DNA of 64,000 nucleotides, from assembly GCF_964194025.1 (NCBI RefSeq), contig NW_027451295.1, positions 1 through 64,000 of the forward strand. Reading direction: 5' to 3'. The position numbers were made by a program, and so were the translations under genes. Under the pieces are notes generated by a model. The model searched no databases. It saw only the letters and a program-made list of their open reading frames with translations, and was not told the origin of the DNA. Of this stretch, positions 29,311 through 59,763 are shown piece by piece. How positions within the stretch are numbered: position 1 is the stretch's first letter; each line of letters begins with the position of its first letter. Source of the stretch: Convolutriloba macropyga. Lineage: Eukaryota.

Positions 29311-29343
29311 ATCTATCAACCTCAGTCAAAAACATGAATCACA

Positions 29344-31942: not shown

Positions 31943-32197
31943 GTTGGAAGCATAGCTACCATGATTTTGATGTAAATCTATCAACCTCAGTCAAAAACAT
32001 GAATCACACTGTGGGTGCGAGGGTTGGCCTAGGTTTTCAGACCCTTTCTAGGTTTTTACTCCAAGGGGACGCCTCATGTAGTCGGCGCCGCCATTCCACG
32101 CTGATGTGCACTCAAAATATCATTGTTATCCTTCCACCAGTGCCACTTTGTTTGCACGCACAGTTCTCCCGTAAGAATTTCAGTCTCTACGTACACA

Positions 32198-33250
32198 ATG
32201 GGGCGTGCTGCTGAGGATCTAGCATGGCGCTGGAAGCTTGTTCTTGAGTATGAGCGAGTGGGAAACTACTCTAAAGTCGCACAACGCCTACTATGCGATG
32301 CGAGAGTCGTGAAAAAGTGGGTGCTTCGCTATAAGGAGACTGGTGATGTGCAAGACAAGGACAGGTCTGGCAGACCCAGTGCAGGGTTGTCAAGGCCTGA
32401 GGTGCAGGAACTGCTGAAAGCAGGCATAGAGGATGGGCTGAAGTGTCCACAACTATCCAACAAGCTGAAGAAGGATATGGGAATCTCTGTGAGCAAGGAA
32501 ACTGTGAGGTTGCATCTACATGCCAACTTGGGGCGGCCGCTTCGTCCACGAAAAAAGCCCCAGCTGACAGACAGCCACAAGGCCAAGCGCTTGGCTTTCT
32601 GTTTGCAGTGGGTGAACAGGGATTGGTCAAATGTGGCTGTGTCAGACTCTAAGATCTTTTGGCTCAGTCGAAAGGGCATTGGCAACAAGGTATGGGTGTT
32701 GTATGGGGCTGAACCACCTGTGGAGGCTGCGTACAGAGACTGCACCAAAGTTCATGCTTATGCAGCTGTCACCAGGTGGGGCAAAACTCCACTGTTCTTC
32801 ACTGCAGGCACCACAGGAATTAAATTCCCATCTAAGGGAGTAGGTGCTCAGTTATACCTTCAACTATTGGAGCAGCAGTTGGTTCCAGCCATAAGGGAGC
32901 TCATGAAGCAATGCAACGGCGTTCAAAGGGGGCGCCCCTGGATATTTCAGCAAGATGGGGCCCCAGCCCATAGGGCCAAGGTCACCAAGGCATGGCTAGC
33001 ACAACAACCTGGCTTCACAGTGATGGAATGGCCCCCTAACAGCCCAGACTTGAGCTGGATTGAAAACCTATGGAGCGTGGTAGCTAAGCAACTTCACAAA
33101 AGGACAGATTTGACACCTCAAAATTTCGCTCAAGCAGTGATTGAAGAGTGGGATAGGATCCCTAGCAACACCTACATGGCATTGTACAATTCCATTCAGC
33201 GAAGGCTGAGGTCTTGTATTGAGAACAATGGAGGGCATACAAAATACTAG
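32198..33250 (+). CDS. Tc1-like DD35E transposase, copy 3
   Basis: Translation identical to copy 1. Confidence 0.93.
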   Translation: MGRAAEDLAWRWKLVLEYERVGNYSKVAQRLLCDARVVKKWVLRYKETGDVQDKDRSGRPSAGLSRPEVQELLKAGIEDGLKCPQLSNKLKKDMGISVSKETVRLHLHANLGRPLRPRKKPQLTDSHKAKRLAFCLQWVNRDWSNVAVSDSKIFWLSRKGIGNKVWVLYGAEPPVEAAYRDCTKVHAYAAVTRWGKTPLFFTAGTTGIKFPSKGVGAQLYLQLLEQQLVPAIRELMKQCNGVQRGRPWIFQQDGAPAHRAKVTKAWLAQQPGFTVMEWPPNSPDLSWIENLWSVVAKQLHKRTDLTPQNFAQAVIEEWDRIPSNTYMALYNSIQRRLRSCIENNGGHTKY

Positions 33251-33505
33251 GTTGGAAGCATAGCTACCATGATTTTGATGTAAATCTATCAACCTCAGTC
33301 AAAAACATGAATCACACAGTGGGTGCGAGGGTTGGCCTAGGTTTTCAGACCCTTTCTAGGTTTTTACTCCAAGGGGACGCCTCATGTAGTCGGCGCCGCC
33401 ATTCCACGCTGATGTGCACTCAAAATATCATTGTTATCCTTCCACCAGTGCCACTTTGTTTGCACGCACAGTTCTCCCGTAAGAATTTCAGTCTCTACGT
33501 ACACA

Positions 33506-34558
33506 ATGGGGCGTGCTGCTGAGGATCTAGCATGGCGCTGGAAGCTTGTTCTTGAGTATGAGCGAGTGGGAAACTACTCTAAAGTCGCACAACGCCTACT
33601 ATGCGATGCGAGAGTCGTGAAAAAGTGGGTGCTTCGCTATAAGGAGACTGGTGATGTGCAAGACAAGGACAGGTCTGGCAGACCCAGTGCAGGGTTGTCA
33701 AGGCCTGAGGTGCAGGAACTGCTGAAAGCAGGCATAGAGGATGGGCTGAAGTGTCCACAACTATCCAACAAGCTGAAGAAGGATATGGGAATCTCTGTGA
33801 GCAAGGAAACTGTGAGGTTGCATCTACATGCCAACTTGGGGCGGCCGCTTCGTCCACGAAAAAAGCCCCAGCTGACAGACAGCCACAAGGCCAAGCGCTT
33901 GGCTTTCTGTTTGCAGTGGGTGAACAGGGATTGGTCAAATGTGGCTGTGTCAGACTCTAAGATCTTTTGGCTCAGTCGAAAGGGCATTGGCAACAAGGTA
34001 TGGGTGTTGTATGGGGCTGAACCACCTGTGGAGGCTGCGTACAGAGACTGCACCAAAGTTCATGCTTATGCAGCTGTCACCAGGTGGGGCAAAACTCCAC
34101 TGTTCTTCACTGCAGGCACCACAGGAATTAAATTCCCATCTAAGGGAGTAGGTGCTCAGTTATACCTTCAACTATTGGAGCAGCAGTTGGTTCCAGCCAT
34201 AAGGGAGCTCATGAAGCAATGCAACGGCGTTCAAAGGGGGCGCCCCTGGATATTTCAGCAAGATGGGGCCCCAGCCCATAGGGCCAAGGTCACCAAGGCA
34301 TGGCTAGCACAACAACCTGGCTTCACAGTGATGGAATGGCCCCCTAACAGCCCAGACTTGAGCTGGATTGAAAACCTATGGAGCGTGGTAGCTAAGCAAC
34401 TTCACAAAAGGACAGATTTGACACCTCAAAATTTCGCTCAAGCAGTGATTGAAGAGTGGGATAGGATCCCTAGCAACACCTACATGGCATTGTACAATTC
34501 CATTCAGCGAAGGCTGAGGTCTTGTATTGAGAACAATGGAGGGCATACAAAATACTAG
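33506..34558 (+). CDS. Tc1-like DD35E transposase, copy 4
   Basis: Translation identical to copy 1. Confidence 0.93.
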   Translation: MGRAAEDLAWRWKLVLEYERVGNYSKVAQRLLCDARVVKKWVLRYKETGDVQDKDRSGRPSAGLSRPEVQELLKAGIEDGLKCPQLSNKLKKDMGISVSKETVRLHLHANLGRPLRPRKKPQLTDSHKAKRLAFCLQWVNRDWSNVAVSDSKIFWLSRKGIGNKVWVLYGAEPPVEAAYRDCTKVHAYAAVTRWGKTPLFFTAGTTGIKFPSKGVGAQLYLQLLEQQLVPAIRELMKQCNGVQRGRPWIFQQDGAPAHRAKVTKAWLAQQPGFTVMEWPPNSPDLSWIENLWSVVAKQLHKRTDLTPQNFAQAVIEEWDRIPSNTYMALYNSIQRRLRSCIENNGGHTKY

Positions 34559-34813
34559 GTTGGAAGCATAGCTACCATGATTTTGATGTAAATCTATCAA
34601 CCTCAGTCAAAAACATGAATCACACTGTGGGTGCGAGGGTTGGCCTAGGTTTTCAGACCCTTTCTAGGTTTTTACTCCAAGGGGACGCCTCATGTAGTCG
34701 GCGCCGCCATTCCACGCTGATGTGCACTCAAAATATCATTGTTATCCTTCCACCAGTGCCACTTTGTTTGCACGCACAGTTCTCCCGTAAGAATTTCAGT
34801 CTCTACGTACACA

Positions 34814-35866
34814 ATGGGGCGTGCTGCTGAGGATCTAGCATGGCGCTGGAAGCTTGTTCTTGAGTATGAGCGAGTGGGAAACTACTCTAAAGTCGCACAA
34901 CGCCTACTATGCGATGCGAGAGTCGTGAAAAAGTGGGTGCTTCGCTATAAGGAGACTGGTGATGTGCAAGACAAGGACAGGTCTGGCAGACCCAGTGCAG
35001 GGTTGTCAAGGCCTGAGGTGCAGGAACTGCTGAAAGCAGGCATAGAGGATGGGCTGAAGTGTCCACAACTATCCAACAAGCTGAAGAAGGATATGGGAAT
35101 CTCTGTGAGCAAGGAAACTGTGAGGTTGCATCTACATGCCAACTTGGGGCGGCCGCTTCGTCCACGAAAAAAGCCCCAGCTGACAGACAGCCACAAGGCC
35201 AAGCGCTTGGCTTTCTGTTTGCAGTGGGTGAACAGGGATTGGTCAAATGTGGCTGTGTCAGACTCTAAGATCTTTTGGCTCAGTCGAAAGGGCATTGGCA
35301 ACAAGGTATGGGTGTTGTATGGGGCTGAACCACCTGTGGAGGCTGCGTACAGAGACTGCACCAAAGTTCATGCTTATGCAGCTGTCACCAGGTGGGGCAA
35401 AACTCCACTGTTCTTCACTGCAGGCACCACAGGAATTAAATTCCCATCTAAGGGAGTAGGTGCTCAGTTATACCTTCAACTATTGGAGCAGCAGTTGGTT
35501 CCAGCCATAAGGGAGCTCATGAAGCAATGCAACGGCGTTCAAAGGGGGCGCCCCTGGATATTTCAGCAAGATGGGGCCCCAGCCCATAGGGCCAAGGTCA
35601 CCAAGGCATGGCTAGCACAACAACCTGGCTTCACAGTGATGGAATGGCCCCCTAACAGCCCAGACTTGAGCTGGATTGAAAACCTATGGAGCGTGGTAGC
35701 TAAGCAACTTCACAAAAGGACAGATTTGACACCTCAAAATTTCGCTCAAGCAGTGATTGAAGAGTGGGATAGGATCCCTAGCAACACCTACATGGCATTG
35801 TACAATTCCATTCAGCGAAGGCTGAGGTCTTGTATTGAGAACAATGGAGGGCATACAAAATACTAG
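34814..35866 (+). CDS. Tc1-like DD35E transposase, copy 5
   Basis: Translation identical to copy 1. Confidence 0.93.
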   Translation: MGRAAEDLAWRWKLVLEYERVGNYSKVAQRLLCDARVVKKWVLRYKETGDVQDKDRSGRPSAGLSRPEVQELLKAGIEDGLKCPQLSNKLKKDMGISVSKETVRLHLHANLGRPLRPRKKPQLTDSHKAKRLAFCLQWVNRDWSNVAVSDSKIFWLSRKGIGNKVWVLYGAEPPVEAAYRDCTKVHAYAAVTRWGKTPLFFTAGTTGIKFPSKGVGAQLYLQLLEQQLVPAIRELMKQCNGVQRGRPWIFQQDGAPAHRAKVTKAWLAQQPGFTVMEWPPNSPDLSWIENLWSVVAKQLHKRTDLTPQNFAQAVIEEWDRIPSNTYMALYNSIQRRLRSCIENNGGHTKY

Positions 35867-36121
35867 GTTGGAAGCATAGCTACCATGATTTTGATGTAAA
35901 TCTATCAACCTCAGTCAAAAACATGAATCACACAGTGGGTGCGAGGGTTGGCCTAGGTTTTCAGACCCTTTCTAGGTTTTTACTCCAAGGGGACGCCTCA
36001 TGTAGTCGGCGCCGCCATTCCACGCTGATGTGCACTCAAAATATCATTGTTATCCTTCCACCAGTGCCACTTTGTTTGCACGCACAGTTCTCCCGTAAGA
36101 ATTTCAGTCTCTACGTACACA

Positions 36122-37174
36122 ATGGGGCGTGCTGCTGAGGATCTAGCATGGCGCTGGAAGCTTGTTCTTGAGTATGAGCGAGTGGGAAACTACTCTAAAG
36201 TCGCACAACGCCTACTATGCGATGCGAGAGTCGTGAAAAAGTGGGTGCTTCGCTATAAGGAGACTGGTGATGTGCAAGACAAGGACAGGTCTGGCAGACC
36301 CAGTGCAGGGTTGTCAAGGCCTGAGGTGCAGGAACTGCTGAAAGCAGGCATAGAGGATGGGCTGAAGTGTCCACAACTATCCAACAAGCTGAAGAAGGAT
36401 ATGGGAATCTCTGTGAGCAAGGAAACTGTGAGGTTGCATCTACATGCCAACTTGGGGCGGCCGCTTCGTCCACGAAAAAAGCCCCAGCTGACAGACAGCC
36501 ACAAGGCCAAGCGCTTGGCTTTCTGTTTGCAGTGGGTGAACAGGGATTGGTCAAATGTGGCTGTGTCAGACTCTAAGATCTTTTGGCTCAGTCGAAAGGG
36601 CATTGGCAACAAGGTATGGGTGTTGTATGGGGCTGAACCACCTGTGGAGGCTGCGTACAGAGACTGCACCAAAGTTCATGCTTATGCAGCTGTCACCAGG
36701 TGGGGCAAAACTCCACTGTTCTTCACTGCAGGCACCACAGGAATTAAATTCCCATCTAAGGGAGTAGGTGCTCAGTTATACCTTCAACTATTGGAGCAGC
36801 AGTTGGTTCCAGCCATAAGGGAGCTCATGAAGCAATGCAACGGCGTTCAAAGGGGGCGCCCCTGGATATTTCAGCAAGATGGGGCCCCAGCCCATAGGGC
36901 CAAGGTCACCAAGGCATGGCTAGCACAACAACCTGGCTTCACAGTGATGGAATGGCCCCCTAACAGCCCAGACTTGAGCTGGATTGAAAACCTATGGAGC
37001 GTGGTAGCTAAGCAACTTCACAAAAGGACAGATTTGACACCTCAAAATTTCGCTCAAGCAGTGATTGAAGAGTGGGATAGGATCCCTAGCAACACCTACA
37101 TGGCATTGTACAATTCCATTCAGCGAAGGCTGAGGTCTTGTATTGAGAACAATGGAGGGCATACAAAATACTAG
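36122..37174 (+). CDS. Tc1-like DD35E transposase, copy 6
   Basis: Translation identical to copy 1. Confidence 0.93.
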   Translation: MGRAAEDLAWRWKLVLEYERVGNYSKVAQRLLCDARVVKKWVLRYKETGDVQDKDRSGRPSAGLSRPEVQELLKAGIEDGLKCPQLSNKLKKDMGISVSKETVRLHLHANLGRPLRPRKKPQLTDSHKAKRLAFCLQWVNRDWSNVAVSDSKIFWLSRKGIGNKVWVLYGAEPPVEAAYRDCTKVHAYAAVTRWGKTPLFFTAGTTGIKFPSKGVGAQLYLQLLEQQLVPAIRELMKQCNGVQRGRPWIFQQDGAPAHRAKVTKAWLAQQPGFTVMEWPPNSPDLSWIENLWSVVAKQLHKRTDLTPQNFAQAVIEEWDRIPSNTYMALYNSIQRRLRSCIENNGGHTKY

Positions 37175-37429
37175 GTTGGAAGCATAGCTACCATGATTTT
37201 GATGTAAATCTATCAACCTCAGTCAAAAACATGAATCACACAGTGGGTGCGAGGGTTGGCCTAGGTTTTCAGACCCTTTCTAGGTTTTTACTCCAAGGGG
37301 ACGCCTCATGTAGTCGGCGCCGCCATTCCACGCTGATGTGCACTCAAAATATCATTGTTATCCTTCCACCAGTGCCACTTTGTTTGCACGCACAGTTCTC
37401 CCGTAAGAATTTCAGTCTCTACGTACACA

Positions 37430-38482
37430 ATGGGGCGTGCTGCTGAGGATCTAGCATGGCGCTGGAAGCTTGTTCTTGAGTATGAGCGAGTGGGAAACTA
37501 CTCTAAAGTCGCACAACGCCTACTATGCGATGCGAGAGTCGTGAAAAAGTGGGTGCTTCGCTATAAGGAGACTGGTGATGTGCAAGACAAGGACAGGTCT
37601 GGCAGACCCAGTGCAGGGTTGTCAAGGCCTGAGGTGCAGGAACTGCTGAAAGCAGGCATAGAGGATGGGCTGAAGTGTCCACAACTATCCAACAAGCTGA
37701 AGAAGGATATGGGAATCTCTGTGAGCAAGGAAACTGTGAGGTTGCATCTACATGCCAACTTGGGGCGGCCGCTTCGTCCACGAAAAAAGCCCCAGCTGAC
37801 AGACAGCCACAAGGCCAAGCGCTTGGCTTTCTGTTTGCAGTGGGTGAACAGGGATTGGTCAAATGTGGCTGTGTCAGACTCTAAGATCTTTTGGCTCAGT
37901 CGAAAGGGCATTGGCAACAAGGTATGGGTGTTGTATGGGGCTGAACCACCTGTGGAGGCTGCGTACAGAGACTGCACCAAAGTTCATGCTTATGCAGCTG
38001 TCACCAGGTGGGGCAAAACTCCACTGTTCTTCACTGCAGGCACCACAGGAATTAAATTCCCATCTAAGGGAGTAGGTGCTCAGTTATACCTTCAACTATT
38101 GGAGCAGCAGTTGGTTCCAGCCATAAGGGAGCTCATGAAGCAATGCAACGGCGTTCAAAGGGGGCGCCCCTGGATATTTCAGCAAGATGGGGCCCCAGCC
38201 CATAGGGCCAAGGTCACCAAGGCATGGCTAGCACAACAACCTGGCTTCACAGTGATGGAATGGCCCCCTAACAGCCCAGACTTGAGCTGGATTGAAAACC
38301 TATGGAGCGTGGTAGCTAAGCAACTTCACAAAAGGACAGATTTGACACCTCAAAATTTCGCTCAAGCAGTGATTGAAGAGTGGGATAGGATCCCTAGCAA
38401 CACCTACATGGCATTGTACAATTCCATTCAGCGAAGGCTGAGGTCTTGTATTGAGAACAATGGAGGGCATACAAAATACTAG
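37430..38482 (+). CDS. Tc1-like DD35E transposase, copy 7
   Basis: Translation identical to copy 1. Confidence 0.93.
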   Translation: MGRAAEDLAWRWKLVLEYERVGNYSKVAQRLLCDARVVKKWVLRYKETGDVQDKDRSGRPSAGLSRPEVQELLKAGIEDGLKCPQLSNKLKKDMGISVSKETVRLHLHANLGRPLRPRKKPQLTDSHKAKRLAFCLQWVNRDWSNVAVSDSKIFWLSRKGIGNKVWVLYGAEPPVEAAYRDCTKVHAYAAVTRWGKTPLFFTAGTTGIKFPSKGVGAQLYLQLLEQQLVPAIRELMKQCNGVQRGRPWIFQQDGAPAHRAKVTKAWLAQQPGFTVMEWPPNSPDLSWIENLWSVVAKQLHKRTDLTPQNFAQAVIEEWDRIPSNTYMALYNSIQRRLRSCIENNGGHTKY

Positions 38483-38737
38483 GTTGGAAGCATAGCTACC
38501 ATGATTTTGATGTAAATCTATCAACCTCAGTCAAAAACATGAATCACACTGTGGGTGCGAGGGTTGGCCTAGGTTTTCAGACCCTTTCTAGGTTTTTACT
38601 CCAAGGGGACGCCTCATGTAGTCGGCGCCGCCATTCCACGCTGATGTGCACTCAAAATATCATTGTTATCCTTCCACCAGTGCCACTTTGTTTGCACGCA
38701 CAGTTCTCCCGTAAGAATTTCAGTCTCTACGTACACA

Positions 38738-39790
38738 ATGGGGCGTGCTGCTGAGGATCTAGCATGGCGCTGGAAGCTTGTTCTTGAGTATGAGCGAGTG
38801 GGAAACTACTCTAAAGTCGCACAACGCCTACTATGCGATGCGAGAGTCGTGAAAAAGTGGGTGCTTCGCTATAAGGAGACTGGTGATGTGCAAGACAAGG
38901 ACAGGTCTGGCAGACCCAGTGCAGGGTTGTCAAGGCCTGAGGTGCAGGAACTGCTGAAAGCAGGCATAGAGGATGGGCTGAAGTGTCCACAACTATCCAA
39001 CAAGCTGAAGAAGGATATGGGAATCTCTGTGAGCAAGGAAACTGTGAGGTTGCATCTACATGCCAACTTGGGGCGGCCGCTTCGTCCACGAAAAAAGCCC
39101 CAGCTGACAGACAGCCACAAGGCCAAGCGCTTGGCTTTCTGTTTGCAGTGGGTGAACAGGGATTGGTCAAATGTGGCTGTGTCAGACTCTAAGATCTTTT
39201 GGCTCAGTCGAAAGGGCATTGGCAACAAGGTATGGGTGTTGTATGGGGCTGAACCACCTGTGGAGGCTGCGTACAGAGACTGCACCAAAGTTCATGCTTA
39301 TGCAGCTGTCACCAGGTGGGGCAAAACTCCACTGTTCTTCACTGCAGGCACCACAGGAATTAAATTCCCATCTAAGGGAGTAGGTGCTCAGTTATACCTT
39401 CAACTATTGGAGCAGCAGTTGGTTCCAGCCATAAGGGAGCTCATGAAGCAATGCAACGGCGTTCAAAGGGGGCGCCCCTGGATATTTCAGCAAGATGGGG
39501 CCCCAGCCCATAGGGCCAAGGTCACCAAGGCATGGCTAGCACAACAACCTGGCTTCACAGTGATGGAATGGCCCCCTAACAGCCCAGACTTGAGCTGGAT
39601 TGAAAACCTATGGAGCGTGGTAGCTAAGCAACTTCACAAAAGGACAGATTTGACACCTCAAAATTTCGCTCAAGCAGTGATTGAAGAGTGGGATAGGATC
39701 CCTAGCAACACCTACATGGCATTGTACAATTCCATTCAGCGAAGGCTGAGGTCTTGTATTGAGAACAATGGAGGGCATACAAAATACTAG
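38738..39790 (+). CDS. Tc1-like DD35E transposase, copy 8
   Basis: Translation identical to copy 1. Confidence 0.93.
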   Translation: MGRAAEDLAWRWKLVLEYERVGNYSKVAQRLLCDARVVKKWVLRYKETGDVQDKDRSGRPSAGLSRPEVQELLKAGIEDGLKCPQLSNKLKKDMGISVSKETVRLHLHANLGRPLRPRKKPQLTDSHKAKRLAFCLQWVNRDWSNVAVSDSKIFWLSRKGIGNKVWVLYGAEPPVEAAYRDCTKVHAYAAVTRWGKTPLFFTAGTTGIKFPSKGVGAQLYLQLLEQQLVPAIRELMKQCNGVQRGRPWIFQQDGAPAHRAKVTKAWLAQQPGFTVMEWPPNSPDLSWIENLWSVVAKQLHKRTDLTPQNFAQAVIEEWDRIPSNTYMALYNSIQRRLRSCIENNGGHTKY

Positions 39791-40045
39791 GTTGGAAGCA
39801 TAGCTACCATGATTTTGATGTAAATCTATCAACCTCAGTCAAAAACATGAATCACACTGTGGGTGCGAGGGTTGGCCTAGGTTTTCAGACCCTTTCTAGG
39901 TTTTTACTCCAAGGGGACGCCTCATGTAGTCGGCGCCGCCATTCCACGCTGATGTGCACTCAAAATATCATTGTTATCCTTCCACCAGTGCCACTTTGTT
40001 TGCACGCACAGTTCTCCCGTAAGAATTTCAGTCTCTACGTACACA

Positions 40046-41098
40046 ATGGGGCGTGCTGCTGAGGATCTAGCATGGCGCTGGAAGCTTGTTCTTGAGTATG
40101 AGCGAGTGGGAAACTACTCTAAAGTCGCACAACGCCTACTATGCGATGCGAGAGTCGTGAAAAAGTGGGTGCTTCGCTATAAGGAGACTGGTGATGTGCA
40201 AGACAAGGACAGGTCTGGCAGACCCAGTGCAGGGTTGTCAAGGCCTGAGGTGCAGGAACTGCTGAAAGCAGGCATAGAGGATGGGCTGAAGTGTCCACAA
40301 CTATCCAACAAGCTGAAGAAGGATATGGGAATCTCTGTGAGCAAGGAAACTGTGAGGTTGCATCTACATGCCAACTTGGGGCGGCCGCTTCGTCCACGAA
40401 AAAAGCCCCAGCTGACAGACAGCCACAAGGCCAAGCGCTTGGCTTTCTGTTTGCAGTGGGTGAACAGGGATTGGTCAAATGTGGCTGTGTCAGACTCTAA
40501 GATCTTTTGGCTCAGTCGAAAGGGCATTGGCAACAAGGTATGGGTGTTGTATGGGGCTGAACCACCTGTGGAGGCTGCGTACAGAGACTGCACCAAAGTT
40601 CATGCTTATGCAGCTGTCACCAGGTGGGGCAAAACTCCACTGTTCTTCACTGCAGGCACCACAGGAATTAAATTCCCATCTAAGGGAGTAGGTGCTCAGT
40701 TATACCTTCAACTATTGGAGCAGCAGTTGGTTCCAGCCATAAGGGAGCTCATGAAGCAATGCAACGGCGTTCAAAGGGGGCGCCCCTGGATATTTCAGCA
40801 AGATGGGGCCCCAGCCCATAGGGCCAAGGTCACCAAGGCATGGCTAGCACAACAACCTGGCTTCACAGTGATGGAATGGCCCCCTAACAGCCCAGACTTG
40901 AGCTGGATTGAAAACCTATGGAGCGTGGTAGCTAAGCAACTTCACAAAAGGACAGATTTGACACCTCAAAATTTCGCTCAAGCAGTGATTGAAGAGTGGG
41001 ATAGGATCCCTAGCAACACCTACATGGCATTGTACAATTCCATTCAGCGAAGGCTGAGGTCTTGTATTGAGAACAATGGAGGGCATACAAAATACTAG
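40046..41098 (+). CDS. Tc1-like DD35E transposase, copy 9
   Basis: Translation identical to copy 1. Confidence 0.93.
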   Translation: MGRAAEDLAWRWKLVLEYERVGNYSKVAQRLLCDARVVKKWVLRYKETGDVQDKDRSGRPSAGLSRPEVQELLKAGIEDGLKCPQLSNKLKKDMGISVSKETVRLHLHANLGRPLRPRKKPQLTDSHKAKRLAFCLQWVNRDWSNVAVSDSKIFWLSRKGIGNKVWVLYGAEPPVEAAYRDCTKVHAYAAVTRWGKTPLFFTAGTTGIKFPSKGVGAQLYLQLLEQQLVPAIRELMKQCNGVQRGRPWIFQQDGAPAHRAKVTKAWLAQQPGFTVMEWPPNSPDLSWIENLWSVVAKQLHKRTDLTPQNFAQAVIEEWDRIPSNTYMALYNSIQRRLRSCIENNGGHTKY

Positions 41099-41353
41099 GT
41101 TGGAAGCATAGCTACCATGATTTTGATGTAAATCTATCAACCTCAGTCAAAAACATGAATCACACAGTGGGTGCGAGGGTTGGCCTAGGTTTTCAGACCC
41201 TTTCTAGGTTTTTACTCCAAGGGGACGCCTCATGTAGTCGGCGCCGCCATTCCACGCTGATGTGCACTCAAAATATCATTGTTATCCTTCCACCAGTGCC
41301 ACTTTGTTTGCACGCACAGTTCTCCCGTAAGAATTTCAGTCTCTACGTACACA

Positions 41354-42406
41354 ATGGGGCGTGCTGCTGAGGATCTAGCATGGCGCTGGAAGCTTGTTCT
41401 TGAGTATGAGCGAGTGGGAAACTACTCTAAAGTCGCACAACGCCTACTATGCGATGCGAGAGTCGTGAAAAAGTGGGTGCTTCGCTATAAGGAGACTGGT
41501 GATGTGCAAGACAAGGACAGGTCTGGCAGACCCAGTGCAGGGTTGTCAAGGCCTGAGGTGCAGGAACTGCTGAAAGCAGGCATAGAGGATGGGCTGAAGT
41601 GTCCACAACTATCCAACAAGCTGAAGAAGGATATGGGAATCTCTGTGAGCAAGGAAACTGTGAGGTTGCATCTACATGCCAACTTGGGGCGGCCGCTTCG
41701 TCCACGAAAAAAGCCCCAGCTGACAGACAGCCACAAGGCCAAGCGCTTGGCTTTCTGTTTGCAGTGGGTGAACAGGGATTGGTCAAATGTGGCTGTGTCA
41801 GACTCTAAGATCTTTTGGCTCAGTCGAAAGGGCATTGGCAACAAGGTATGGGTGTTGTATGGGGCTGAACCACCTGTGGAGGCTGCGTACAGAGACTGCA
41901 CCAAAGTTCATGCTTATGCAGCTGTCACCAGGTGGGGCAAAACTCCACTGTTCTTCACTGCAGGCACCACAGGAATTAAATTCCCATCTAAGGGAGTAGG
42001 TGCTCAGTTATACCTTCAACTATTGGAGCAGCAGTTGGTTCCAGCCATAAGGGAGCTCATGAAGCAATGCAACGGCGTTCAAAGGGGGCGCCCCTGGATA
42101 TTTCAGCAAGATGGGGCCCCAGCCCATAGGGCCAAGGTCACCAAGGCATGGCTAGCACAACAACCTGGCTTCACAGTGATGGAATGGCCCCCTAACAGCC
42201 CAGACTTGAGCTGGATTGAAAACCTATGGAGCGTGGTAGCTAAGCAACTTCACAAAAGGACAGATTTGACACCTCAAAATTTCGCTCAAGCAGTGATTGA
42301 AGAGTGGGATAGGATCCCTAGCAACACCTACATGGCATTGTACAATTCCATTCAGCGAAGGCTGAGGTCTTGTATTGAGAACAATGGAGGGCATACAAAA
42401 TACTAG
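41354..42406 (+). CDS. Tc1-like DD35E transposase, copy 10
   Basis: Translation identical to copy 1. Confidence 0.93.
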   Translation: MGRAAEDLAWRWKLVLEYERVGNYSKVAQRLLCDARVVKKWVLRYKETGDVQDKDRSGRPSAGLSRPEVQELLKAGIEDGLKCPQLSNKLKKDMGISVSKETVRLHLHANLGRPLRPRKKPQLTDSHKAKRLAFCLQWVNRDWSNVAVSDSKIFWLSRKGIGNKVWVLYGAEPPVEAAYRDCTKVHAYAAVTRWGKTPLFFTAGTTGIKFPSKGVGAQLYLQLLEQQLVPAIRELMKQCNGVQRGRPWIFQQDGAPAHRAKVTKAWLAQQPGFTVMEWPPNSPDLSWIENLWSVVAKQLHKRTDLTPQNFAQAVIEEWDRIPSNTYMALYNSIQRRLRSCIENNGGHTKY

Positions 42407-42661
42407 GTTGGAAGCATAGCTACCATGATTTTGATGTAAATCTATCAACCTCAGTCAAAAACATGAATCACACAGTGGGTGCGAGGGTTGGCCTAGGTTT
42501 TCAGACCCTTTCTAGGTTTTTACTCCAAGGGGACGCCTCATGTAGTCGGCGCCGCCATTCCACGCTGATGTGCACTCAAAATATCATTGTTATCCTTCCA
42601 CCAGTGCCACTTTGTTTGCACGCACAGTTCTCCCGTAAGAATTTCAGTCTCTACGTACACA

Positions 42662-43714: not shown

Positions 43715-43780
43715 GTTGGAAGCATAGCTACCATGATTTTGATGTAAATCTATCAACCTCAGTCAAAAACATGAATCACA

Positions 43781-48995: not shown

Positions 48996-49250
48996 GTTGG
49001 AAGCATAGCTACCATGATTTTGATGTAAATCTATCAACCTCAGTCAAAAACATGAATCACACTGTGGGTGCGAGGGTTGGCCTAGGTTTTCAGACCCTTT
49101 CTAGGTTTTTACTCCAAGGGGACGCCTCATGTAGTCGGCGCCGCCATTCCACGCTGATGTGCACTCAAAATATCATTGTTATCCTTCCACCAGTGCCACT
49201 TTGTTTGCACGCACAGTTCTCCCGTAAGAATTTCAGTCTCTACGTACACA

Positions 49251-50303: not shown

Positions 50304-50369
50304 GTTGGAAGCATAGCTACCATGATTTTGATGTAAATCTATCAACCTCAGTCAAAAACATGAATCACA

Positions 50370-51729: not shown

Positions 51730-51915
51730 TGGGTGCGAGGGTTGGCCTAGGTTTTCAGACCCTTTCTAGGTTTTTACTCCAAGGGGACGCCTCATGTAGT
51801 CGGCGCCGCCATTCCACGCTGATGTGCACTCAAAATATCATTGTTATCCTTCCACCAGTGCCACTTTGTTTGCACGCACAGTTCTCCCGTAAGAATTTCA
51901 GTCTCTACGTACACA

Positions 51916-52968
51916 ATGGGGCGTGCTGCTGAGGATCTAGCATGGCGCTGGAAGCTTGTTCTTGAGTATGAGCGAGTGGGAAACTACTCTAAAGTCGCAC
52001 AACGCCTACTATGCGATGCGAGAGTCGTGAAAAAGTGGGTGCTTCGCTATAAGGAGACTGGTGATGTGCAAGACAAGGACAGGTCTGGCAGACCCAGTGC
52101 AGGGTTGTCAAGGCCTGAGGTGCAGGAACTGCTGAAAGCAGGCATAGAGGATGGGCTGAAGTGTCCACAACTATCCAACAAGCTGAAGAAGGATATGGGA
52201 ATCTCTGTGAGCAAGGAAACTGTGAGGTTGCATCTACATGCCAACTTGGGGCGGCCGCTTCGTCCACGAAAAAAGCCCCAGCTGACAGACAGCCACAAGG
52301 CCAAGCGCTTGGCTTTCTGTTTGCAGTGGGTGAACAGGGATTGGTCAAATGTGGCTGTGTCAGACTCTAAGATCTTTTGGCTCAGTCGAAAGGGCATTGG
52401 CAACAAGGTATGGGTGTTGTATGGGGCTGAACCACCTGTGGAGGCTGCGTACAGAGACTGCACCAAAGTTCATGCTTATGCAGCTGTCACCAGGTGGGGC
52501 AAAACTCCACTGTTCTTCACTGCAGGCACCACAGGAATTAAATTCCCATCTAAGGGAGTAGGTGCTCAGTTATACCTTCAACTATTGGAGCAGCAGTTGG
52601 TTCCAGCCATAAGGGAGCTCATGAAGCAATGCAACGGCGTTCAAAGGGGGCGCCCCTGGATATTTCAGCAAGATGGGGCCCCAGCCCATAGGGCCAAGGT
52701 CACCAAGGCATGGCTAGCACAACAACCTGGCTTCACAGTGATGGAATGGCCCCCTAACAGCCCAGACTTGAGCTGGATTGAAAACCTATGGAGCGTGGTA
52801 GCTAAGCAACTTCACAAAAGGACAGATTTGACACCTCAAAATTTCGCTCAAGCAGTGATTGAAGAGTGGGATAGGATCCCTAGCAACACCTACATGGCAT
52901 TGTACAATTCCATTCAGCGAAGGCTGAGGTCTTGTATTGAGAACAATGGAGGGCATACAAAATACTAG
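51916..52968 (+). CDS. Tc1-like DD35E transposase, copy 16
   Basis: Translation identical to copy 1. Confidence 0.93.
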   Translation: MGRAAEDLAWRWKLVLEYERVGNYSKVAQRLLCDARVVKKWVLRYKETGDVQDKDRSGRPSAGLSRPEVQELLKAGIEDGLKCPQLSNKLKKDMGISVSKETVRLHLHANLGRPLRPRKKPQLTDSHKAKRLAFCLQWVNRDWSNVAVSDSKIFWLSRKGIGNKVWVLYGAEPPVEAAYRDCTKVHAYAAVTRWGKTPLFFTAGTTGIKFPSKGVGAQLYLQLLEQQLVPAIRELMKQCNGVQRGRPWIFQQDGAPAHRAKVTKAWLAQQPGFTVMEWPPNSPDLSWIENLWSVVAKQLHKRTDLTPQNFAQAVIEEWDRIPSNTYMALYNSIQRRLRSCIENNGGHTKY

Positions 52969-53223
52969 GTTGGAAGCATAGCTACCATGATTTTGATGTA
53001 AATCTATCAACCTCAGTCAAAAACATGAATCACACTGTGGGTGCGAGGGTTGGCCTAGGTTTTCAGACCCTTTCTAGGTTTTTACTCCAAGGGGACGCCT
53101 CATGTAGTCGGCGCCGCCATTCCACGCTGATGTGCACTCAAAATATCATTGTTATCCTTCCACCAGTGCCACTTTGTTTGCACGCACAGTTCTCCCGTAA
53201 GAATTTCAGTCTCTACGTACACA

Positions 53224-54276
53224 ATGGGGCGTGCTGCTGAGGATCTAGCATGGCGCTGGAAGCTTGTTCTTGAGTATGAGCGAGTGGGAAACTACTCTAA
53301 AGTCGCACAACGCCTACTATGCGATGCGAGAGTCGTGAAAAAGTGGGTGCTTCGCTATAAGGAGACTGGTGATGTGCAAGACAAGGACAGGTCTGGCAGA
53401 CCCAGTGCAGGGTTGTCAAGGCCTGAGGTGCAGGAACTGCTGAAAGCAGGCATAGAGGATGGGCTGAAGTGTCCACAACTATCCAACAAGCTGAAGAAGG
53501 ATATGGGAATCTCTGTGAGCAAGGAAACTGTGAGGTTGCATCTACATGCCAACTTGGGGCGGCCGCTTCGTCCACGAAAAAAGCCCCAGCTGACAGACAG
53601 CCACAAGGCCAAGCGCTTGGCTTTCTGTTTGCAGTGGGTGAACAGGGATTGGTCAAATGTGGCTGTGTCAGACTCTAAGATCTTTTGGCTCAGTCGAAAG
53701 GGCATTGGCAACAAGGTATGGGTGTTGTATGGGGCTGAACCACCTGTGGAGGCTGCGTACAGAGACTGCACCAAAGTTCATGCTTATGCAGCTGTCACCA
53801 GGTGGGGCAAAACTCCACTGTTCTTCACTGCAGGCACCACAGGAATTAAATTCCCATCTAAGGGAGTAGGTGCTCAGTTATACCTTCAACTATTGGAGCA
53901 GCAGTTGGTTCCAGCCATAAGGGAGCTCATGAAGCAATGCAACGGCGTTCAAAGGGGGCGCCCCTGGATATTTCAGCAAGATGGGGCCCCAGCCCATAGG
54001 GCCAAGGTCACCAAGGCATGGCTAGCACAACAACCTGGCTTCACAGTGATGGAATGGCCCCCTAACAGCCCAGACTTGAGCTGGATTGAAAACCTATGGA
54101 GCGTGGTAGCTAAGCAACTTCACAAAAGGACAGATTTGACACCTCAAAATTTCGCTCAAGCAGTGATTGAAGAGTGGGATAGGATCCCTAGCAACACCTA
54201 CATGGCATTGTACAATTCCATTCAGCGAAGGCTGAGGTCTTGTATTGAGAACAATGGAGGGCATACAAAATACTAG
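53224..54276 (+). CDS. Tc1-like DD35E transposase, copy 17
   Basis: Translation identical to copy 1. Confidence 0.93.
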   Translation: MGRAAEDLAWRWKLVLEYERVGNYSKVAQRLLCDARVVKKWVLRYKETGDVQDKDRSGRPSAGLSRPEVQELLKAGIEDGLKCPQLSNKLKKDMGISVSKETVRLHLHANLGRPLRPRKKPQLTDSHKAKRLAFCLQWVNRDWSNVAVSDSKIFWLSRKGIGNKVWVLYGAEPPVEAAYRDCTKVHAYAAVTRWGKTPLFFTAGTTGIKFPSKGVGAQLYLQLLEQQLVPAIRELMKQCNGVQRGRPWIFQQDGAPAHRAKVTKAWLAQQPGFTVMEWPPNSPDLSWIENLWSVVAKQLHKRTDLTPQNFAQAVIEEWDRIPSNTYMALYNSIQRRLRSCIENNGGHTKY

Positions 54277-54531
54277 GTTGGAAGCATAGCTACCATGATT
54301 TTGATGTAAATCTATCAACCTCAGTCAAAAACATGAATCACACAGTGGGTGCGAGGGTTGGCCTAGGTTTTCAGACCCTTTCTAGGTTTTTACTCCAAGG
54401 GGACGCCTCATGTAGTCGGCGCCGCCATTCCACGCTGATGTGCACTCAAAATATCATTGTTATCCTTCCACCAGTGCCACTTTGTTTGCACGCACAGTTC
54501 TCCCGTAAGAATTTCAGTCTCTACGTACACA

Positions 54532-55584
54532 ATGGGGCGTGCTGCTGAGGATCTAGCATGGCGCTGGAAGCTTGTTCTTGAGTATGAGCGAGTGGGAAAC
54601 TACTCTAAAGTCGCACAACGCCTACTATGCGATGCGAGAGTCGTGAAAAAGTGGGTGCTTCGCTATAAGGAGACTGGTGATGTGCAAGACAAGGACAGGT
54701 CTGGCAGACCCAGTGCAGGGTTGTCAAGGCCTGAGGTGCAGGAACTGCTGAAAGCAGGCATAGAGGATGGGCTGAAGTGTCCACAACTATCCAACAAGCT
54801 GAAGAAGGATATGGGAATCTCTGTGAGCAAGGAAACTGTGAGGTTGCATCTACATGCCAACTTGGGGCGGCCGCTTCGTCCACGAAAAAAGCCCCAGCTG
54901 ACAGACAGCCACAAGGCCAAGCGCTTGGCTTTCTGTTTGCAGTGGGTGAACAGGGATTGGTCAAATGTGGCTGTGTCAGACTCTAAGATCTTTTGGCTCA
55001 GTCGAAAGGGCATTGGCAACAAGGTATGGGTGTTGTATGGGGCTGAACCACCTGTGGAGGCTGCGTACAGAGACTGCACCAAAGTTCATGCTTATGCAGC
55101 TGTCACCAGGTGGGGCAAAACTCCACTGTTCTTCACTGCAGGCACCACAGGAATTAAATTCCCATCTAAGGGAGTAGGTGCTCAGTTATACCTTCAACTA
55201 TTGGAGCAGCAGTTGGTTCCAGCCATAAGGGAGCTCATGAAGCAATGCAACGGCGTTCAAAGGGGGCGCCCCTGGATATTTCAGCAAGATGGGGCCCCAG
55301 CCCATAGGGCCAAGGTCACCAAGGCATGGCTAGCACAACAACCTGGCTTCACAGTGATGGAATGGCCCCCTAACAGCCCAGACTTGAGCTGGATTGAAAA
55401 CCTATGGAGCGTGGTAGCTAAGCAACTTCACAAAAGGACAGATTTGACACCTCAAAATTTCGCTCAAGCAGTGATTGAAGAGTGGGATAGGATCCCTAGC
55501 AACACCTACATGGCATTGTACAATTCCATTCAGCGAAGGCTGAGGTCTTGTATTGAGAACAATGGAGGGCATACAAAATACTAG
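54532..55584 (+). CDS. Tc1-like DD35E transposase, copy 18
   Basis: Translation identical to copy 1. Confidence 0.93.
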   Translation: MGRAAEDLAWRWKLVLEYERVGNYSKVAQRLLCDARVVKKWVLRYKETGDVQDKDRSGRPSAGLSRPEVQELLKAGIEDGLKCPQLSNKLKKDMGISVSKETVRLHLHANLGRPLRPRKKPQLTDSHKAKRLAFCLQWVNRDWSNVAVSDSKIFWLSRKGIGNKVWVLYGAEPPVEAAYRDCTKVHAYAAVTRWGKTPLFFTAGTTGIKFPSKGVGAQLYLQLLEQQLVPAIRELMKQCNGVQRGRPWIFQQDGAPAHRAKVTKAWLAQQPGFTVMEWPPNSPDLSWIENLWSVVAKQLHKRTDLTPQNFAQAVIEEWDRIPSNTYMALYNSIQRRLRSCIENNGGHTKY

Positions 55585-55839
55585 GTTGGAAGCATAGCTA
55601 CCATGATTTTGATGTAAATCTATCAACCTCAGTCAAAAACATGAATCACACTGTGGGTGCGAGGGTTGGCCTAGGTTTTCAGACCCTTTCTAGGTTTTTA
55701 CTCCAAGGGGACGCCTCATGTAGTCGGCGCCGCCATTCCACGCTGATGTGCACTCAAAATATCATTGTTATCCTTCCACCAGTGCCACTTTGTTTGCACG
55801 CACAGTTCTCCCGTAAGAATTTCAGTCTCTACGTACACA

Positions 55840-56892
55840 ATGGGGCGTGCTGCTGAGGATCTAGCATGGCGCTGGAAGCTTGTTCTTGAGTATGAGCGAG
55901 TGGGAAACTACTCTAAAGTCGCACAACGCCTACTATGCGATGCGAGAGTCGTGAAAAAGTGGGTGCTTCGCTATAAGGAGACTGGTGATGTGCAAGACAA
56001 GGACAGGTCTGGCAGACCCAGTGCAGGGTTGTCAAGGCCTGAGGTGCAGGAACTGCTGAAAGCAGGCATAGAGGATGGGCTGAAGTGTCCACAACTATCC
56101 AACAAGCTGAAGAAGGATATGGGAATCTCTGTGAGCAAGGAAACTGTGAGGTTGCATCTACATGCCAACTTGGGGCGGCCGCTTCGTCCACGAAAAAAGC
56201 CCCAGCTGACAGACAGCCACAAGGCCAAGCGCTTGGCTTTCTGTTTGCAGTGGGTGAACAGGGATTGGTCAAATGTGGCTGTGTCAGACTCTAAGATCTT
56301 TTGGCTCAGTCGAAAGGGCATTGGCAACAAGGTATGGGTGTTGTATGGGGCTGAACCACCTGTGGAGGCTGCGTACAGAGACTGCACCAAAGTTCATGCT
56401 TATGCAGCTGTCACCAGGTGGGGCAAAACTCCACTGTTCTTCACTGCAGGCACCACAGGAATTAAATTCCCATCTAAGGGAGTAGGTGCTCAGTTATACC
56501 TTCAACTATTGGAGCAGCAGTTGGTTCCAGCCATAAGGGAGCTCATGAAGCAATGCAACGGCGTTCAAAGGGGGCGCCCCTGGATATTTCAGCAAGATGG
56601 GGCCCCAGCCCATAGGGCCAAGGTCACCAAGGCATGGCTAGCACAACAACCTGGCTTCACAGTGATGGAATGGCCCCCTAACAGCCCAGACTTGAGCTGG
56701 ATTGAAAACCTATGGAGCGTGGTAGCTAAGCAACTTCACAAAAGGACAGATTTGACACCTCAAAATTTCGCTCAAGCAGTGATTGAAGAGTGGGATAGGA
56801 TCCCTAGCAACACCTACATGGCATTGTACAATTCCATTCAGCGAAGGCTGAGGTCTTGTATTGAGAACAATGGAGGGCATACAAAATACTAG
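55840..56892 (+). CDS. Tc1-like DD35E transposase, copy 19
   Basis: Translation identical to copy 1. Confidence 0.93.
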   Translation: MGRAAEDLAWRWKLVLEYERVGNYSKVAQRLLCDARVVKKWVLRYKETGDVQDKDRSGRPSAGLSRPEVQELLKAGIEDGLKCPQLSNKLKKDMGISVSKETVRLHLHANLGRPLRPRKKPQLTDSHKAKRLAFCLQWVNRDWSNVAVSDSKIFWLSRKGIGNKVWVLYGAEPPVEAAYRDCTKVHAYAAVTRWGKTPLFFTAGTTGIKFPSKGVGAQLYLQLLEQQLVPAIRELMKQCNGVQRGRPWIFQQDGAPAHRAKVTKAWLAQQPGFTVMEWPPNSPDLSWIENLWSVVAKQLHKRTDLTPQNFAQAVIEEWDRIPSNTYMALYNSIQRRLRSCIENNGGHTKY

Positions 56893-57147
56893 GTTGGAAG
56901 CATAGCTACCATGATTTTGATGTAAATCTATCAACCTCAGTCAAAAACATGAATCACACAGTGGGTGCGAGGGTTGGCCTAGGTTTTCAGACCCTTTCTA
57001 GGTTTTTACTCCAAGGGGACGCCTCATGTAGTCGGCGCCGCCATTCCACGCTGATGTGCACTCAAAATATCATTGTTATCCTTCCACCAGTGCCACTTTG
57101 TTTGCACGCACAGTTCTCCCGTAAGAATTTCAGTCTCTACGTACACA

Positions 57148-58200
57148 ATGGGGCGTGCTGCTGAGGATCTAGCATGGCGCTGGAAGCTTGTTCTTGAGTA
57201 TGAGCGAGTGGGAAACTACTCTAAAGTCGCACAACGCCTACTATGCGATGCGAGAGTCGTGAAAAAGTGGGTGCTTCGCTATAAGGAGACTGGTGATGTG
57301 CAAGACAAGGACAGGTCTGGCAGACCCAGTGCAGGGTTGTCAAGGCCTGAGGTGCAGGAACTGCTGAAAGCAGGCATAGAGGATGGGCTGAAGTGTCCAC
57401 AACTATCCAACAAGCTGAAGAAGGATATGGGAATCTCTGTGAGCAAGGAAACTGTGAGGTTGCATCTACATGCCAACTTGGGGCGGCCGCTTCGTCCACG
57501 AAAAAAGCCCCAGCTGACAGACAGCCACAAGGCCAAGCGCTTGGCTTTCTGTTTGCAGTGGGTGAACAGGGATTGGTCAAATGTGGCTGTGTCAGACTCT
57601 AAGATCTTTTGGCTCAGTCGAAAGGGCATTGGCAACAAGGTATGGGTGTTGTATGGGGCTGAACCACCTGTGGAGGCTGCGTACAGAGACTGCACCAAAG
57701 TTCATGCTTATGCAGCTGTCACCAGGTGGGGCAAAACTCCACTGTTCTTCACTGCAGGCACCACAGGAATTAAATTCCCATCTAAGGGAGTAGGTGCTCA
57801 GTTATACCTTCAACTATTGGAGCAGCAGTTGGTTCCAGCCATAAGGGAGCTCATGAAGCAATGCAACGGCGTTCAAAGGGGGCGCCCCTGGATATTTCAG
57901 CAAGATGGGGCCCCAGCCCATAGGGCCAAGGTCACCAAGGCATGGCTAGCACAACAACCTGGCTTCACAGTGATGGAATGGCCCCCTAACAGCCCAGACT
58001 TGAGCTGGATTGAAAACCTATGGAGCGTGGTAGCTAAGCAACTTCACAAAAGGACAGATTTGACACCTCAAAATTTCGCTCAAGCAGTGATTGAAGAGTG
58101 GGATAGGATCCCTAGCAACACCTACATGGCATTGTACAATTCCATTCAGCGAAGGCTGAGGTCTTGTATTGAGAACAATGGAGGGCATACAAAATACTAG
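57148..58200 (+). CDS. Tc1-like DD35E transposase, copy 20
   Basis: Translation identical to copy 1. Confidence 0.93.
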   Translation: MGRAAEDLAWRWKLVLEYERVGNYSKVAQRLLCDARVVKKWVLRYKETGDVQDKDRSGRPSAGLSRPEVQELLKAGIEDGLKCPQLSNKLKKDMGISVSKETVRLHLHANLGRPLRPRKKPQLTDSHKAKRLAFCLQWVNRDWSNVAVSDSKIFWLSRKGIGNKVWVLYGAEPPVEAAYRDCTKVHAYAAVTRWGKTPLFFTAGTTGIKFPSKGVGAQLYLQLLEQQLVPAIRELMKQCNGVQRGRPWIFQQDGAPAHRAKVTKAWLAQQPGFTVMEWPPNSPDLSWIENLWSVVAKQLHKRTDLTPQNFAQAVIEEWDRIPSNTYMALYNSIQRRLRSCIENNGGHTKY

Positions 58201-58455
58201 GTTGGAAGCATAGCTACCATGATTTTGATGTAAATCTATCAACCTCAGTCAAAAACATGAATCACACTGTGGGTGCGAGGGTTGGCCTAGGTTTTCAGAC
58301 CCTTTCTAGGTTTTTACTCCAAGGGGACGCCTCATGTAGTCGGCGCCGCCATTCCACGCTGATGTGCACTCAAAATATCATTGTTATCCTTCCACCAGTG
58401 CCACTTTGTTTGCACGCACAGTTCTCCCGTAAGAATTTCAGTCTCTACGTACACA

Positions 58456-59508
58456 ATGGGGCGTGCTGCTGAGGATCTAGCATGGCGCTGGAAGCTTGTT
58501 CTTGAGTATGAGCGAGTGGGAAACTACTCTAAAGTCGCACAACGCCTACTATGCGATGCGAGAGTCGTGAAAAAGTGGGTGCTTCGCTATAAGGAGACTG
58601 GTGATGTGCAAGACAAGGACAGGTCTGGCAGACCCAGTGCAGGGTTGTCAAGGCCTGAGGTGCAGGAACTGCTGAAAGCAGGCATAGAGGATGGGCTGAA
58701 GTGTCCACAACTATCCAACAAGCTGAAGAAGGATATGGGAATCTCTGTGAGCAAGGAAACTGTGAGGTTGCATCTACATGCCAACTTGGGGCGGCCGCTT
58801 CGTCCACGAAAAAAGCCCCAGCTGACAGACAGCCACAAGGCCAAGCGCTTGGCTTTCTGTTTGCAGTGGGTGAACAGGGATTGGTCAAATGTGGCTGTGT
58901 CAGACTCTAAGATCTTTTGGCTCAGTCGAAAGGGCATTGGCAACAAGGTATGGGTGTTGTATGGGGCTGAACCACCTGTGGAGGCTGCGTACAGAGACTG
59001 CACCAAAGTTCATGCTTATGCAGCTGTCACCAGGTGGGGCAAAACTCCACTGTTCTTCACTGCAGGCACCACAGGAATTAAATTCCCATCTAAGGGAGTA
59101 GGTGCTCAGTTATACCTTCAACTATTGGAGCAGCAGTTGGTTCCAGCCATAAGGGAGCTCATGAAGCAATGCAACGGCGTTCAAAGGGGGCGCCCCTGGA
59201 TATTTCAGCAAGATGGGGCCCCAGCCCATAGGGCCAAGGTCACCAAGGCATGGCTAGCACAACAACCTGGCTTCACAGTGATGGAATGGCCCCCTAACAG
59301 CCCAGACTTGAGCTGGATTGAAAACCTATGGAGCGTGGTAGCTAAGCAACTTCACAAAAGGACAGATTTGACACCTCAAAATTTCGCTCAAGCAGTGATT
59401 GAAGAGTGGGATAGGATCCCTAGCAACACCTACATGGCATTGTACAATTCCATTCAGCGAAGGCTGAGGTCTTGTATTGAGAACAATGGAGGGCATACAA
59501 AATACTAG
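58456..59508 (+). CDS. Tc1-like DD35E transposase, copy 21
   Basis: Translation identical to copy 1. Confidence 0.93.
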   Translation: MGRAAEDLAWRWKLVLEYERVGNYSKVAQRLLCDARVVKKWVLRYKETGDVQDKDRSGRPSAGLSRPEVQELLKAGIEDGLKCPQLSNKLKKDMGISVSKETVRLHLHANLGRPLRPRKKPQLTDSHKAKRLAFCLQWVNRDWSNVAVSDSKIFWLSRKGIGNKVWVLYGAEPPVEAAYRDCTKVHAYAAVTRWGKTPLFFTAGTTGIKFPSKGVGAQLYLQLLEQQLVPAIRELMKQCNGVQRGRPWIFQQDGAPAHRAKVTKAWLAQQPGFTVMEWPPNSPDLSWIENLWSVVAKQLHKRTDLTPQNFAQAVIEEWDRIPSNTYMALYNSIQRRLRSCIENNGGHTKY

Positions 59509-59763
59509 GTTGGAAGCATAGCTACCATGATTTTGATGTAAATCTATCAACCTCAGTCAAAAACATGAATCACACAGTGGGTGCGAGGGTTGGCCTAGGT
59601 TTTCAGACCCTTTCTAGGTTTTTACTCCAAGGGGACGCCTCATGTAGTCGGCGCCGCCATTCCACGCTGATGTGCACTCAAAATATCATTGTTATCCTTC
59701 CACCAGTGCCACTTTGTTTGCACGCACAGTTCTCCCGTAAGAATTTCAGTCTCTACGTACACA

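Follow-up and report, generated by a model that had tools for sequence, protein, structure and literature searches.

Two described systems are among the closest to the array analysed here, in which a non-coding module (A) and a module with a predicted transposase gene (B) are repeated in tandem within a 64,000-nucleotide (nt) stretch of the Convolutriloba macropyga genome (NW_027451295.1, positions 1-64,000, forward strand; hereafter the window). The first is KolobokP, in which a transposase-encoding segment termed INT lies between a pair of long terminal direct repeats (LTDRs), each bearing short terminal inverted repeats (TIRs) of its own; besides the basic LTDR-INT-LTDR form there are multimers of the type (LTDR-INT)n-LTDR, and forms of the type LTDR-(INT)n-LTDR, which Kojima and Bao (2022) attributed to LTDR excision (PMC9587614). 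The second is the Tc1/mariner group, whose transposases cut exactly at the 3' ends of the element and 2-3 nt inside its 5' ends, such that the donor keeps the element's 3' overhangs (PMC2170065; PMC7827188); the 2-nt stagger has been mapped for ISY100 (PMC2170065), and the canonical scar of Sleeping Beauty is TAC(A/T)GTA (PMC6943129; PMC7827188), in agreement with a sequence-only reading of the window which had noted that this transposon leaves CAG/CTG footprints. Our best-supported reading places Tc1-type footprints in the array, inside a composite build like that of KolobokP but in an element of another superfamily.

The likeness to KolobokP lies in the architecture. The forms encountered, namely A-B-A, A-B-A-B-A, arrays and B-B, correspond to the basic form, the multimers and the INT-INT joints of KolobokP; the transposase again occupies the centre, and the length of the direct repeat is again constrained. 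At the same time, KolobokP belongs to the Kolobok superfamily and makes target-site duplications (TSDs) of 3-5 bp, whereas the A-B-A element is of the Tc1/mariner type and duplicates TA. KolobokP also encodes a His-Me nuclease proposed to drive multimerisation, whereas the A-B-A element has neither a Kolobok transposase nor a His-Me finger nuclease, and no second conserved gene was found in it. The joints of KolobokP lose 3-4 bp of INT, whereas the B ends of the array are intact and three element bases are added, and arrays of the A-B-A element are much longer and hold a larger share of B (23 B to 6 A). Given its Tc1-like transposase, its TA duplications and the lack of a His-Me nuclease, we regard the A-B-A element as one that works like KolobokP without being a member of it. 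Searches of the open-access literature for Tc1/mariner elements built with long terminal direct repeats gave no description, the KolobokP paper being the only one retrieved on such a design.

With Sleeping Beauty and Tc1 the element shares a Tc1-like DDE transposase, the TA duplication, and a 3-nt C(A/T)G scar made of terminal bases that comes in two mirror variants. Unlike those of Sleeping Beauty, the scars of the array lie between CA and TG flanks, and TA stands beside a scar only at the left edge of one dispersed locus (L030). The 3-nt CAG overhangs of Sleeping Beauty pair around an A:A mismatch, whereas the CAC..GTG ends of A need a 2-nt stagger or trimming; and Sleeping Beauty is DD34E, whereas the A-B-A element is DD35E. 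Bacterial composite transposons, whether flanked by insertion sequences (IS) in the manner of Tn10 or pseudo-compound as with IS26, also have two TIR-bounded modules that bracket a centre and move together, and there too a single module can act alone. Their flanking IS carry the transposase and their centre is cargo, however, while A-B-A has non-coding flanks and a transposase in the centre.

The A-B-A unit and its transposase

The mobile unit is A-B-A, a transposase gene between direct copies of a TIR-bounded non-coding A. We compared the window with contigs of a second assembly (ENA ERZ25071359) that carry an identical or near-identical transposase, and found A-B-A (4025 bp) at 12 loci, A-B-A-B-A at one and B-B-A at one, in addition to an array contig. 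TA lies on both sides at 11 of the 12 A-B-A loci and at the A-B-A-B-A locus, and the array in the window likewise starts TA-CACTA; because TA flanks the dispersed A-B-A copies, we take A-B-A to be a transposon of the Tc1/mariner type, for which a TA target-site duplication is characteristic. The outermost ends are A ends in 13 of the 14 loci, none of which is a solo B, and these outermost A ends are the working ends of the element. Module A is thus the long terminal direct repeat of the A-B-A element, and not, as the sequence-only reading had supposed, a separate element sitting in an array of B. The sole A-B-A copy that lacks a left TA has a left flank ending in ...cacagt, with TA on its right side.

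The 1305-bp module B holds an intact open reading frame (ORF) of 350 amino acids (aa) plus stop, whose product matches HTH_Tnp_Tc3_2 (E 4.5e-13) and DDE_3 (E 7.5e-12) in Pfam and has the catalytic domain of SB100X (Sleeping Beauty) as its best and only PDB sequence match (E 1e-22). D150, D253 and E289 do not vary among 20 aligned relatives, and the D-E spacing is 35 residues (DD35E). The protein combines a paired-like helix-turn-helix with a DDE/D triad in a following RNase H-like domain. B accordingly encodes an intact Tc1-type DD35E transposase.

Module A (1360 bp) is bounded by 24-bp TIRs with two mismatches, CACTA[C/A]TCCAA[T/A]AAAGTTCATGCA. Across six families the A TIRs begin CAC or CAG and have the motif CAC..A(A/T)AAGT(C/T) in common, which the B ends do not share; they enclose the non-coding A, not the gene, and the gene sits between outward-facing ends. 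The A modules of these families measure 1337-1364 bp and have little common sequence beyond the TIR motif, so that a length close to that of B (~1300-1356 bp) is held in families that are otherwise unalignable. No credible or Pfam-type ORF was found in A. We considered and rejected three identities for it: a decayed copy of B, suggested by the similar lengths, since six A modules, translated in all six frames and compared by profile search with the alignment of transposases, scored no better than E ~2; an RNA gene, since Rfam gave no match at E <=0.1; and a conserved coding region, since only two short patches are common to pairs of families and a recurrent 55-aa ORF is unsupported as a gene.

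The layout recurs among relatives. Those with 43-64% protein identity keep the A-B-A build, one as A'B'A'B'A' with TA flanks (L005) and another as A''B''A'' (L007), while in L004 and L009 the TIRs on either side of B face outward and a family from other samples (F30, 43% identity) is represented by B-A-B and B-B contigs. The A-B-A layout is accordingly inherited and not accidental. In more distant relatives (25-45% identity) from JGI metagenomes, the gene is enclosed by long inverted repeats of the ordinary kind, from which it follows that the A-B-A clade is a derived branch of ordinary Tc1-like elements; a scan of the JGI metagenomes for further B-B joints added none, distant relatives being all that was recovered. 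One relative (L006) reads TA-CACTC...GAGTG-TA and has 698-bp direct repeats around its transposase gene, with the inner TIRs absent; it looks like an A-B-A that has lost the inner tips of both A modules, which would block the loss of single A copies. An ORF upstream of the A''B''A'' element has a weak Pfam match to Replitron_C.

The surroundings of the dispersed copies offer two further observations. The heptamer TACTGTA adjoins several insertions (in L022, L030 and L026), the reconstructed target at L022 being TA-CTG-TA-CTG-TA and the sequence at L030 reading TA-CTG-TA-CAG-B. Among the TA-NNN-TA heptamers in 176 kb of host flanks, TAC(A/T)GTA ranks second in frequency, at 3.3x over what an order-3 Markov model predicts. 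These sites could be old Tc1-type scars together with repeated site use, or merely a common simple motif. Separately, an intron-free gene for ribosomal protein eL15 adjoins one insertion; its best structure matches are solved ribosome entries which we take to be plant ribosomes.

Triplets at the B-B joints

From position 26679 the array reads TA, then A-B-A-(B)10-A-(B)4-A-(B)7-A-B-A, and continues past the end of the window. All 29 units have one orientation, and the 23 B units and six A units are 100% identical within each kind. Every one of the 18 B-B joints reads GAATCACA-C(A/T)G-TGGGTG, at spacings of 1308 bp or 3973 bp, with T in the middle of nine triplets and A in the middle of the other nine; this middle base is the sole variable position across ~37 kb. 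The joint pattern GAATCACACWGTGGGTG has 18 exact matches in the window, all on the plus strand, where shuffled sequence is expected to give 0. Five sites show the filled form, GAATCACA-CACTA...TAGTG-TGGGTG, with module A inserted at the same position as the triplet. The triplets are also derivable from A itself, CAG being its first two bases plus its last and CTG its first base plus its last two, each the mirror image of the other. On both counts, that a CAG or CTG occupies every B-B joint where A would sit and that it is composed of terminal bases of A, the sequence-only reading holds, and the triplets lie at the coordinates that it gave.

Such joints need not have arisen by loss of A. The B-B joint, CAC-W-GTG, is a 7-bp palindrome and as such a plausible recognition site, and A always lies at exactly that position, so A might have been inserted site-specifically into an original joint, the empty sites never having held it. 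We consider this very unlikely: at nearly all its dispersed loci, and at the left end of the array, the element duplicates TA; the filled site has no duplication and could be derived from CWG only if the triplet were replaced; and the form that is dispersed and conserved across families is A-B-A, not B-B.

If A was lost, the breakpoints bear on how. For either triplet, the two breakpoints have zero bases of microhomology, which speaks against replication slippage or microhomology-mediated deletion, both of which we rejected, and fits two symmetric overhangs. The joints thus show what is seen in Tc1-type footprints, namely two to four retained terminal bases, mirror variants and no microhomology. 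Several other origins were tried and set aside. Hairpin-type footprints (hAT/RAG-like) do not yield C(A/T)G as palindromic additions from either choice of boundary; the likeness of CACAGTG to the heptamer of a recombination signal sequence was treated as coincidence, since the enzyme is Tc1-like; and a 3-bp TSD (CWG...CWG) superficially fits F30 but fails in the window family, where the flanks are CAC...GTG.

The triplets are found outside the array as well. L030 reads TA-CAG-B-CTG-B-A-TA: the outer A is missing, CAG lies beside the target TA, and the internal joint is CTG. Its B units differ from those of the array at 11-12 positions (~1%) and from each other at one. In F30, where the A ends read CAG..CTG, three contigs contain the B-B joint TTTCCCA-CTG-TGGGAAT. 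These loci also bear on whether a single, transposase-independent deletion of A, followed by an A/T point change that spread by unequal exchange, might account for the joints. The joints are plainly amplified from few events, judging by their common prefixes and identical B units, as such a history would have it. Yet no other substitution occurs in ~37 kb while the variable base lies at the exact centre of the joint, the deletion endpoints fall no more than 2 nt from the tips of the two TIRs and lack microhomology, and the independent L030 has both variants again, with a CWG joint once more in F30; we hold this history to be highly improbable.

Overall, we believe that the triplets are probably donor-site scars left when A was excised by Tc1-type chemistry. 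The core of this idea, which the sequence-only reading had put forward, is strengthened by the DD35E transposase, the TA duplications, L030 and F30; the mismatch route that it proposed is not singled out by the evidence. A general pathway can be outlined. The A-B-A unit moves by its outermost A ends and duplicates TA, as the dispersed loci show. Unequal exchange between A copies would then give multimers of the form (A-B)n-A, and such multimers are seen. As the core B putatively has no binding sites of its own while each A carries both TIRs, a complete pair of ends would be present on every A, and the transposase could excise a single A or an internal A-B-A. It would cut the 3' strands exactly at the tips of A and the 5' strands at a distance of 2 (or 3) nt from them, within A, so that CA-3' would remain on both B flanks, and end joining would keep three of the four overhang bases, as CA+G or C+TG, to give CAG or CTG. 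Either an A:A mispair or the loss of one terminal base before fill-in would lead to the same two scars; a stagger of 2 nt and a mismatched A:A pair are plausible, if unproven, and terminal-base loss would be an equivalent route. Finally, exchange out of register, or break repair, would multiply a few scars together with their B units and so produce runs of identical B in which T and A partly alternate, a last step that we propose because the blocks have common prefixes.

Several points weigh against this account. Every step beyond the absence of A from these joints is something we infer. The inner A ends in the array are flanked by CA/TG instead of TA, and efficient excision of Sleeping Beauty requires flanking TA. 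The third base of A is C, so that 3-nt CAC overhangs of the Sleeping Beauty type cannot pair, and the A-B-A clade must then cut at 2 nt or have its ends trimmed; a stagger of 2 nt is known for Tc3. Solo A is absent from ~176 kb of flanking DNA, a sample that was picked via the transposase gene and is biased for that reason. The array, L030 and F30 amount to only a small number of independent events, which makes the uniform CWG weaker evidence than "18 of 18" implies. And in F30, B together with the triplet forms a 17-bp inverted repeat of its own, CAGTGGGAA(A)TTATGT, which the footprint model leaves unexplained and which makes the B-B joint a ~30-bp palindrome.

That inverted repeat is what one would look for if B were a Tc1-like element in its own right, bounded by CAG...CTG, whose excised copies were joined head to tail by CTG-3' overhangs. 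The overhangs would anneal C:G, T:T and G:C into a circle or concatemer, arrays would arise by rolling-circle copying or reintegration, and the chemistry predicts exactly the same two triplets. The start of L030, TA-CAGTGGGTG (TA-CAGTGGG), moreover resembles a left end of B inserted at TA, and the array contig of ERZ25071359 was closed as a circle at 19x, compared with 3-9x for single-copy contigs, although an assembler is expected to circularise a tandem array. In the window family, however, the termini of B have only CAGTG in common, the A(A/T)AAGT motif conserved in the A TIRs is missing from them, and beside A the B ends read GTG-TGGG and CACA-CAC, not CAG/CTG. The absence of solo B and the A ends that bound nearly all dispersed copies also count against it, as does the uniform orientation of the array, since identical overhangs would permit head-to-head joints. 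Altogether, we regard ends belonging to B as unlikely. A related and quite unlikely possibility is that B (and A-B) formed extrachromosomal circles or concatemers whose amplified and reintegrated copies are the arrays, the triplets being the annealed 3' overhangs of excised units; if true, a eukaryotic Tc1/mariner element would have a life cycle that is replicative and based on circles, with A supplying the integration ends.

Copy history and assembly of the array

The scars, if such they are, cannot be counted as separate trials. The order A-B-CTG-B-CAG-B opens each of the three blocks of B, 12 of 15 pairs of neighbouring joints switch between T and A (p ~0.02-0.03), and one block of the ERZ25071359 array has a single T and then eight or more A. 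The identical B units and the common block prefix indicate that the 18 joints are amplified copies of few events. The 9:9 count reported by the sequence-only reading is therefore correct, but it provides no evidence that a mismatch segregated 1:1. The simplest history is one of a few excisions, whose scars were multiplied with the B units as monomers or dimers; that one heteroduplex segregated into CAG and CTG sisters, which then recombined to give both types, is speculation.

The array contig of the second assembly (ctg21194, of near-identical DNA) gives the first 12 joints in the same order, T A T A A T T A A, module A, T A T, although the two assemblies may rest on the same reads. Equal order from two assemblers speaks against random polishing error, and hence against the suggestion that the middle base is an artefact of assembly or polishing at a palindrome within a perfect repeat. 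That suggestion has in its favour that the array exceeds typical long reads and is otherwise featureless, so that copy number and order are not fully trustworthy, and that the third block disagrees between the assemblies (T and then at least eight A in ctg21194 versus T A T A T A in the window). The same triplets appear in single-copy contexts nonetheless, in L030 and in the short-read contigs of F30, and an artefact is extremely improbable in our estimation. The third-block difference could reflect the collapse of several arrays or be real. The contig itself (ctg21194_19x_c) is a 35.5-kb array of A-(B)10-A-(B)4-A-(B)10, in which one B has a 1-bp deletion. To the left of the array in the window, 31-bp tandem repeats with a common GGTATCGATAG core occur alongside CGACCCC in 43 copies, a duplication of 320 bp and a run of 152 N bases. 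Coordinates are collected in Table 1.

Table 1. Positions of the array, its joints and the related features in the window and in comparison loci
Feature	Sequence	Position	Strand	Remarks
TA, left half of TA target-site duplication	Window	26677..26678	+	Adjoins first A of array; right end outside window
Module A, copy 1	Window	26679..28038	+	1360 bp, non-coding, long terminal direct repeat of element
Further identical A copies	Window	29344-30703, 43781-45140, 50370-51729, 60883-62242, 63548-64000		Last copy cut by window end
Module B, single copy in A-B-A context	Window	28039..29343	+	Second such B at 62243-63547
Block 1	Window	30704..43780	+	10 identical B, 9 triplets, middle bases T A T A A T T A A
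ORF for the transposase in one B	Window	32198..33250	+	Repeated identically in all 23 B
Block 2	Window	45141..50369	+	4 B joined by CTG, CAG, CTG
Block 3	Window	51730..60882	+	7 B, 6 triplets, middle bases T A T A T A
CTG joints	Window	32009, 34625, 38549, 39857, 46446, 49062, 53035, 55651, 58267	+
CAG joints	Window	33317, 35933, 37241, 41165, 42473, 47754, 54343, 56959, 59575	+
Repeat features left of array	Window	20248-20726, 22200-22370, 24341-24642, 17444-18075, 18633-18784
A modules of other families	L005	6359-7708
	L007	6460-7806
	L010	1297-2633
	L004, L006
Pieces of ctg21194_19x_c	L020, L021, L025, L027, L028
A-B-A copy without left TA	L024	1651-1670
TACTGTA beside insertions	L022	8433-8452, 15149-15160
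	L030	8490-8506
	L026	4312-4320		Right flank
Inverted repeat at F30 B-B joint	L012	2517-2556
	L013	1328-1367
Relative with 698-bp direct repeats	L006	848-4232
ORF with weak Replitron_C match	L007	3117-3635
eL15 gene	L003	9482-10096

Meaning for Tc1/mariner elements

The footprint chemistry is textbook, and what surprises is the context and not the mechanism; most of the interest lies in the architecture and in the experiments that it makes easy. The array is a simple system in which to study the need for TA in excision, the stagger of this clade and the growth of arrays driven by breaks. If our reading is true, nature has recorded excision and repair of the Tc1 type in the array, where one donor site was cut and rejoined with both mirror outcomes kept, and the non-coding A is tied to a transposase encoded outside its own inverted repeats. 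Combined with the A-B-A layout that relatives conserve, this would extend the composite-like LTDR design, until now described only for KolobokP, to Tc1/mariner elements, where it would do without a helper nuclease for multimers.

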